Program-made: the position numbers and the translations under genes
The notes under the pieces: model-generated
The model's database searches: none
The model's input: the letters and a program-made list of their open reading frames with translations, nothing else
Told to the model about the DNA's origin: nothing
NCBI GenBank assembly: GCA_965644295.1
Contig: CBFFRP010000377.1
Span: 62,001-126,000, forward strand
Origin: Paraphysomonas bandaiensis
Lineage: Eukaryota; Protista; Chrysophyceae
Direction: 5' to 3'
Length of the DNA stretch: 64,000 bases
Shown here: positions 44,610 through 46,701 of the stretch, in pieces
How positions within the stretch are numbered: position 1 is the stretch's first letter
How the letters are laid out: the number at the start of each line of letters is the position of its first letter

Positions 44610-46701
44610 CTATCGACCTCTCCACCGTCCCCCTCCCTTTCCTCCACCTCTGGGAGGGTTCATCGTAAGCAACTGTGGAGGCACAGGCTGATTCGCTTCT
44701 CGCAGGAGCTTGACAATATCTCCAGCTAGTCTGGCGTGCTTTTCTGTGAAGAAAGAAACCGACACACCCTTTGCACCTGCCCTTCCAGTACGACCAATTC
44801 GATGAACATAATCCTCGGCAGTCTGTGGCATGTCAAAGTTGATAACGATTCGAACATCCTTTACATCCAACCCACGCGCAGCAACGTCAGTGGCTACTAA
44901 AACCGGAGTGCGTCCAGACCTAAACTCCGCTAACACTTGGTCACGTTCCTGTTGGCTCTTGTCGCCATGAATAGCTCGCACTGGCATACCCTCCATACGA
45001 AGAGATCGGGTGAGTTGGTCAGCACCCTTCTTCGTTTCCACAAAAACAAGAACACGACTCCCGTCGTTAAAGCCACGCATGTGGTGCATCAGGCGAGTGT
45101 ATTTGTCCCAATCAGTAACTACTTCCACTATCTGTTCCACGTTAGTGTTGGCGCGAAGATCCAATGAACCAACATGCACTTCATACGGATCCGAGAGAAA
45201 GTCCGCGGATAGTTGCTTAACTTCCTTTGGCCAAGTTGCAGACCACATGAGCGTCTGACGATCAGGTCGGATCTGAGAGACAATCTTACGGATCTGGGGC
45301 TCGAAACCCATATCAAGCATGCGATCAGCCTCATCCAGTACAAGGTACGTCACACGACGGAGATTGGTGACATTGCTTTCAAGATGGTCGATCAGTCGAC
45401 CTGGAGTAGCAATCACGATCTCCACACCATTCCTGTAAGCAGAGTGAACCATAAAAAACGAAAAGGCAACAAAGTACTCACTTCAGATCATAGACTTGGG
45501 TGCGCTTGGGGACTCCACCATAAACACAAGTGTTCTTAATATCGCTCGAACGGCCAAATTTATCACATTCCTCTTTAATCTGCACTGCTAACTCCCTAGT
45601 CGGCGCCAACACGAGAACAATAGGACCATCACCAGGCTGTAGGTAGGGCTGTGGGGCGCCAGAGTTAAGCAACAATACAAGAGGAGTGGGAAAGCGATAT
45701 GTTCAACAGTCATATCAAGGCAATGTACAGCATCAATAGAGCACGCGGCGTGATGAGGGGAGGGACGGAGGAAAAGCACAGGTTAGGTCTGGTTAACACA
45801 GGCGACAGTAGTAGCAGGAGATCTAGACAGTACAGGCAGCAGCATGCACCGATGTAAGGGTCGGCGAGAGCGTTACCATAAAACACCAACGGGAATTACA
45901 ATACGCCCGTCCCACCAACACACAACACCGGCAAAGCTGCAACAAGTGATTCGATGTCTCCCACCACCACTGCACGACACTGGCAACGCAACAAAAACAG
46001 CTGCAACTATCCCCGTACCAATTATCTCCGCAACTCACCACGCCCATTAACATACAGTTAGACAAACACCTGAGCGTTAATGTGGATCATTCCAGGAAGT
46101 AAGAAAGCTAGGGTCTTTCCAGATCCGGTAGCAGAAATGCCTATCATATCTCGTCCTAATAACGCCATCGGCCAACCTTGAGATTGAATAGGAGTAGCTA
46201 CAAAAAGACATGAGTTTCGAAATTAGCCACTACATATACTTACGTTTCTCGAATCCCTGCTTCATCACTTCCCGCAACACATACTCTGAAGATCATCGTC
46301 ATTGTATAATAAGAAACGCTACCATATGACGTACCAGGCATAGACGCCTCCTCAAAGGAAGAAACAGGCTTGGGAATTCCTCTTCCCACTACAGTAATGT
46401 CACACTTACGTCTCCACTCTTCAGCCTCTTGCTCTGAGCGTCTGCTGACTGCCGGATGCTCAATGTAGAAGTTTTTTTCAAATTTAGGCAGTCGACTTAT
46501 GTCCCACTGAATGCGACCAAGTCCACTGCCTAATCCACCACTCATACGATCTCCTCCATATCCACCACCATATCTATCACCGCCATATCTATCACCGCCA
46601 TATCTATCGCCCCCATTTCCATATCTTCCGCTGTCCCCGCCACCATATCTGTCCCCGTTACCGTATCTATCTCCACCTCCTGATGGTCCGTAATGCGCCA
46701 T
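44610..46701 (-). CDS. DBP2: DEAD-box RNA helicase DBP2/DDX5 (p68) orthologue
   Basis: GDRYG-repeat N-terminus, [36 protein letters not shown] tail; 4 introns. Confidence 0.95.
45649..46069 (-). promoter_or_regulatory. 421-nt structured intron of DBP2 (long nested hairpin), candidate cis-regulatory RNA
   Basis: About 8x the typical intron length here; at least 7 nested G-U-containing helices readable on the transcript strand. Confidence 0.7.

Follow-up and report, generated by a model that had tools for sequence, protein, structure and literature searches.

The window, by which we mean the whole stretch of 64,000 nt (64 kb) that was analysed, carries on its reverse strand an ortholog of the helicase gene DBP2/DDX5 (Table 1). 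Among DEAD-box proteins the best match of its product is DBP2/DDX5/DDX17, with one closest copy; the top solved-structure relatives of its last exon are yeast DBP2 (E 3e-109) and DDX17, the nearest DEAD-box paralog within the same genome is 49% identical, and DBP2 is present as a single copy. The protein tree groups the window DBP2 with Ochromonas danica (local support 0.875), and the host is therefore probably a marine chrysophyte. The DBP2 genes of two loci labelled Symbiodinium (L086) and Ectocarpus (L090) also fall in the chrysophyte-like clade, and these are probably contaminant contigs. All four introns of the gene were found as joints in RNA contigs from four studies, and the contigs that retain intron 3 stop at 44467 (L005) and 44466 (L093).

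Table 1. Coordinates of the DBP2 gene, of the features of its intron 3 (window positions) and of the hairpin in diatom-like loci (positions within each locus).
Feature	Coordinates	Strand	Remarks
DBP2/DDX5 ortholog gene	44610..46701	-	five exons, 508 aa
Exon 1	46701-46335	-	
Exon 2	46285-46244	-	
Exon 3	46197-46070	-	
Exon 4	45648-45482	-	
Exon 5	45432-44610	-	
DBP2 intron 3	45649..46069	-	421 nt; phase 0, following codon 179; RNA contigs show it both spliced and retained
Authentic 5' splice site of intron 3	46064..46072	-	consensus on the exon side, weak on the intron side
In-frame stop, intron codon 4	46058..46060	-	a retained or extended mRNA would give 182 aa, ending before motif Ia
Second donor-like site	46050..46055	-	ensemble pairing unstable; no RNA joint
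Donor-like site	46033..46038	-	consensus-like, paired in the 11-bp outer helix of the rod; no RNA joint; not conserved
Predicted rod-like hairpin	45747..46044	-	about 300 nt; 82 confident pairs including 18 G-U; RNA fold prediction
Likely branch point	45664..45668	-	A at 45665 (acceptor 16 nt away); placed by consensus alone
DBP2 transcript 3' end	44457..44467	-	poly(A) loose end at 44457
11-bp hairpin	L010:2195-2225		
11-bp hairpin	L021:2180-2209		
11-bp hairpin	L029:553-584		
11-bp hairpin	L040:2335-2363		
11-bp hairpin	L073:2351-2385		
11-bp hairpin	L023:137-166		

Intron 3 falls between helicase motifs I and Ia, and RNA contigs of all four runs show it spliced exactly from 46069 to 45649. 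As the first-pass annotation of this DNA had pointed out, it is unusually long: the other DBP2 introns have 49, 46 and 49 nt, and the median intron length is 53 nt among 58 estimates that come from conserved genes in other parts of the genome (52 of them at most 80 nt and one above 200 nt), which means that intron 3 is eight times as long as is usual. The description of the productive donor as weak also holds, as A at +4 and G at +5 are both missing, and its intron side is predicted to be unpaired. The in-frame stop after GTG TTT GTC exists as well, but it is not a special feature of this intron, since the first stop in orthologous introns lies anywhere from codon 2 to codon 125, and we have dropped it as a distinctive feature.

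In each of the four runs, a contig with unspliced intron 3 stands beside the spliced joint, and no contig spans the short introns. The contig depths are unusable as ratios (retained vs. spliced: 17.5 vs. 11 in X1, 3–6 vs. 2.3 in X4, 228 vs. 1245 in X2 and 5.6 vs. 37 in X6), and as assembly may erase the retention of short introns, the contrast with these rests mainly on X1 and X4, in which the retained path is deeper. One full-length transcript contig, L093 (2170 nt, called product P0125), has introns 1, 2 and 4 spliced out and intron 3 alone kept, and its end is within 9 nt of the poly(A) site; L005 is a shorter contig of the same kind. All of this RNA evidence consists of assembled contigs, and shared cultures may lie behind the four runs as well as L005 and L093. 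DNA contamination is an unlikely source of the retained form, because the contigs that keep intron 3 have their short introns removed and the flanks have zero depth in X1 and X4. An unproductive isoform is made by retention of intron 3, with its early stop, which is the retention alternative that had been named beside cryptic splicing. The intron fits the profile of the fungal and animal DBP2-DDX5 intron, i.e., long, inefficiently spliced and retained in mRNA. No alternative-acceptor joint at intron 3 was seen in the contigs of the four runs, which is a weak negative.

The predicted fold of the whole intron has an energy of -141.1 kcal/mol, and against shuffled sequences it is better on the transcript strand only (z -2.45, compared with +1.08 on the opposite strand). 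All seven helices that had been proposed as a nested fold are complementary as listed, and six of them are recovered in the ensemble (pair probability 0.5–1.0), but the outermost one (46052-46044/45739-45731) has a pair probability of 0.00 and was discarded. The outer pair of the rod is 46044 with 45747 (p 0.998). For the rod core (46044-45745), z equals -6.7 in sense and -0.7 in antisense, values that are post hoc because the bounds were picked after inspecting the fold. With shuffling confined to blocks of 25 nt, z of the core is still -4.9, and since such shuffles keep the G-rich and C-rich halves, composition alone is insufficient to account for the core fold. The fold-back score of intron 3 (127, z 5.6) is higher than that of all 606 windows of the same length in the 64 kb except one perfect palindrome. 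In the rod, G-U outnumber A-C oppositions 22 to 5, compared with a 2.45-fold excess expected from composition. Both the strand-specific folding and the strand-biased G-U pairs agree with the earlier view that this is an RNA structure rather than a DNA inverted repeat. In the predicted fold, 25 nt separate the donor from the outer pair of the rod, and the likely branch A is 82 nt away from this pair; the offsets differ among relatives.

A long and imperfect hairpin could also mean that the intron hosts a hairpin RNA (pre-miRNA, siRNA precursor or snoRNA) or is a decayed fold-back transposon, and the conserved intron of human DDX5 has been reported to yield a microRNA, as far as can be told from a title cited in PMC4695336. 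We consider this very improbable. The Rfam scan that had been recommended to exclude SRP RNA, snoRNA and pre-miRNA gave no match for intron 3 at E values up to 5 and none for the introns of relatives, and no exact C-box occurs on the transcript strand inside the intron; known non-coding RNAs are ruled out by these Rfam and box-motif searches. A multicopy MITE or fold-back element is ruled out by the single genomic copy (although a blank search is not proof of rarity) and by the antisense z of the core, which is not that of a strand-neutral element. The relatives share no sequence block, which also argues against a hosted RNA or a transposon, as does the strand bias of the G-U pairs.

Two other structures of this genome deserve mention in their own right. 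Positions 25198-27328 of the window form a near-perfect palindrome of 2.1 kb with arms 100% identical, in which a two-exon glutathione transferase gene is duplicated head to head in inverted orientation; it represents either a recent inverted duplication or an assembly artefact; a relative of it with 76% identity is found on contig C35. An intron of 287 nt in a CCT-family gene on contig C247 (L107:1213-1499) contains C-box-like and D-box-like words within a terminal stem, and it is a candidate box C/D snoRNA below the Rfam thresholds.

An intron at exactly codon 179, in phase 0, is present in 28 distinct ochrophyte loci, with lengths of 210–1715 nt, and it is the longest intron of the gene wherever other introns were found (46–183 nt). 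By the protein tree these loci span chrysophyte-like, Nannochloropsis-like (eustigmatophyte) and diatom-like branches, and the intron is absent from the pelagophyte-like and fungal-like loci that were fetched. The gut-metagenome records L065 and L066 were excluded from every comparison, L013 was not counted as its end falls at an ambiguous junction, and L025 and L027 form a close pair, too similar for covariation. Three pelagophyte-like DBP2 genes (L012, L017 and L018) carry a weak-donor intron of 177–262 nt near codon 136, which may be a regulatory replacement. Contigs with transcript-like bounds that keep the codon-179 intron (L024, L042 and L076) were also noticed, a possible sign of retention in other ochrophytes.

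None of the 28 introns can be aligned to the intron of the window. In the ten chrysophyte-side introns (nine clade members and L006), RNAfold z ranges from -1.6 to -5.9 (15–25 shuffles), and nested stems are deeper than in shuffles. The median fold-back z of the ten closest orthologs is 3.7, compared with -0.1 for flanks of the same length, which are mostly coding sequence (p 1e-5). The single long control intron, 287 nt in a chaperonin gene of the window genome, does not fold into a rod (z -1.0). Several distant orthologs are without a rod. Across eleven chrysophyte-side introns, the ratio of G-U to A-C is 311 to 155, a modest excess over composition except in the window. By hand count, A at +4 of the authentic donor occurs in none of 11 chrysophyte-side introns, in 17 of 26 introns elsewhere in these genes and in 12 of 14 on the diatom side, although weak intron-side donors are frequent after exons that end in AG (3 of 8 with +4 A), which tempers the weakness of the donor. 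As the orthologs are predicted to fold like rods and yet do not align, it appears to be the shape and not the sequence that is kept; of the conservation for which the first-pass annotation had asked, position, length and fold are therefore found, and sequence is not. The chrysophyte side keeps the shape, the length and the weak donor, and does not keep the cryptic donors.

The diatom-side introns give a weaker rod signal (median fold-back z 1.0) and have a strong authentic donor. Six diatom-like loci carry an 11-bp hairpin whose 3' arm opens with a full consensus donor, 125–265 nt upstream of the acceptor. Among these six related sequences, 95.5% of the cells are paired and three pairs are changed on both sides; the covariation score was matched by 1 of 500 shuffles, which is not a probability because the sequences are related, and hairpins of this kind appear in 0.1–0.7% of shuffled introns. 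Two further loci, L014 and L038, look like transcripts: they have the 5' arm and the loop, followed by exon 4 joined exactly at the donor that is hidden in their relatives, and this use of the internal donor inserts a stretch containing a stop. Judging from these sequences, the hidden-donor design that had been proposed for the window is present at the codon-179 intron of diatom-like relatives, i.e., in other organisms.

For the window itself, that proposal was that the rod hides 46038 (and 46055), and that unwinding by DBP2 exposes them, whereupon 31 (or 14) nt that include a stop are added and the product undergoes nonsense-mediated decay. The site at 46038 is indeed a consensus donor and is firmly paired in an outer helix, the diatom-like hairpin over an internal donor follows a like logic, and a preprint on land plants describes a motif that acts likewise at a 3' site (bioRxiv 10.64898/2026.01.23.701338). 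However, 46055 is not reliably hidden, as the helix supposed to cover it has a probability of zero, and where most positions are paired, as in a rod, chance alone would be expected to put a donor-like hexamer into a helix. None of the joints in the RNA contigs of the four runs starts at 46055 or 46038, a weak negative since bubbles of 14 and 31 nt can be lost in assembly, and both decay and contig simplification could conceal the product. In four of the closest relatives (L003, L088, L091 and L092), the codon-179 intron has no donor-like internal site. Cryptic donors as a conserved element were discarded for the chrysophyte clade, and as a mechanism in the window we regard them as rather unlikely.

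We see even less room for the view that nothing is regulated here, namely that an old intron was lengthened, that the rod only makes it spliceable and that retention is simply slow splicing. The eightfold variation in length and the unconserved sequence would fit such a view, and long introns do splice slowly, so that the retained RNA may be a processing intermediate. It is doubtful nevertheless, because the codon-179 intron is long across chrysophytes, eustigmatophytes and diatoms while its neighbours are all short, because the retained contigs extend to the poly(A) region with the other introns spliced out, and because the diatom-like copies keep an unproductive donor under a hairpin.

If retention is regulated, the signal could be stress or another protein instead of unwinding by DBP2, with the rod serving either as a brake or as a platform for binding. 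All of the evidence from RNA and from relatives would fit this equally well, the contig depths hint (roughly) at very different retained fractions between samples, and there is a precedent in fission yeast dbp2, where retention is driven by stress, nuclear decay follows, and the intron recruits Mmi1 and the exosome (PMC4695336). On the other hand, what is conserved is pairing and not a sequence motif, which would suit a helicase better than a sequence-specific reader, and structured long introns recur in the DBP2 gene family. We hold this explanation to be the strongest of the alternatives, albeit an unlikely one.

The explanation we favour, to which we would give close to an even chance, is that the rod assists splicing, that DBP2 loosens the rod and that retention is a negative feedback on the helicase. 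[quoted passage not shown] At high DBP2 activity, the helicase would bind and loosen the rod, or stall the spliceosome on it; with the rod loosened, intron 3 would be retained and no functional helicase made, and the feedback would thus act through retention and not through a cryptic donor. It is already known that zipper stems enhance splicing in yeast and that the autoregulation of RPL7B targets one (PMC12311795). According to work cited in PMC4695336, a helicase-dead mutant relieves retention of the yeast DBP2 intron, and the plant preprint reports that the DRH1 hairpin senses the activity of its own helicase and that its opening also raises retention (bioRxiv 10.64898/2026.01.23.701338). 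In the window, too, DBP2 may sense its own activity.

To hypothesize more broadly, and with more reserve, DBP2/DDX5 genes may have evolved unwinding-sensing introns repeatedly. In ochrophytes, one ancient position would then hold two interchangeable sensors, a chrysophyte rod kept by shape only and acting through retention, and a diatom-like hairpin that masks a donor and acts through alternative 5' splicing, both of them separate from the plant and fungal versions.

Feedback on DBP2/DDX5 by unproductive splicing would in this way extend to stramenopiles, at an intron position that is not the fungal one, and the feature that is kept appears to be RNA shape over sequence. Conserved structure-based alternative splicing has hardly been described in ochrophyte algae, and the literature that we searched contains nothing on it, or on a DBP2 intron, in stramenopiles. 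The diatom-like hairpin is a small testable element in a group for which genetic tools exist, and structured fungal DBP2 introns would allow a direct test of the mechanism behind the long-known yeast autoregulation.

The gene is orthologous to DBP2 of yeast, dbp2 of fission yeast and DDX5 of humans, and the poorly spliced long intron and its retention are alike, as would be the negative control of the helicase level (PMC4695336). That source and its citations, to the extent available, mention no RNA-structure mechanism for the fungal or human intron, and no report of a structured fungal DBP2 long intron was found in the literature searched. In seven loci closest to fungal DBP2 (L068, L081, L082, L083, L084, L085 and L048), an intron of 433–848 nt lies at codon 423, and its fold is in most of them better than that of shuffled sequences (z -1.1 to -4.7). 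The fungal-type loci have this long intron in phase 1 and no intron at codon 179, whereas the intron of the window is at codon 179 in phase 0, in line with the earlier remark that the two positions are distinct. The long intron of human DDX5 lies, like the fungal one, near the end of motif V.

The DEAD motif of land plants (in DRH1/RH14 and RH46) is likewise a hairpin, and it too lies in a long intron of a gene for a DDX5-like helicase, with unproductive premature-stop isoforms that include retention, and with sensing of the helicase's own activity proposed, according to the preprint, which reports the motif as missing from algae (bioRxiv 10.64898/2026.01.23.701338). There it is described as a stem of 19–20 bp with a loop of 3–5 nt and a conserved sequence, unlike the 300-nt rod of unconserved sequence in the window, and as overlapping an alternative 3' site that is used, whereas retention is seen in the window and the diatom-like hairpin hides a 5' site. 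With yeast zipper stems and RPL7B, the window intron has in common a weak signal, and it would also share pairing that shortens the distance from donor to branch point and feedback by disruption of the pairing; in RPL7B, however, an alternative structure is bound by the ribosomal protein, while here a helicase is proposed and no alternative fold has been identified (PMC12311795). In its proposed mode of action, the intron of the window resembles the DEAD motif of plants and the intron of yeast DBP2, and it belongs to neither, since its position is not that of the yeast intron and its architecture and outcome are not those of the plant motif.
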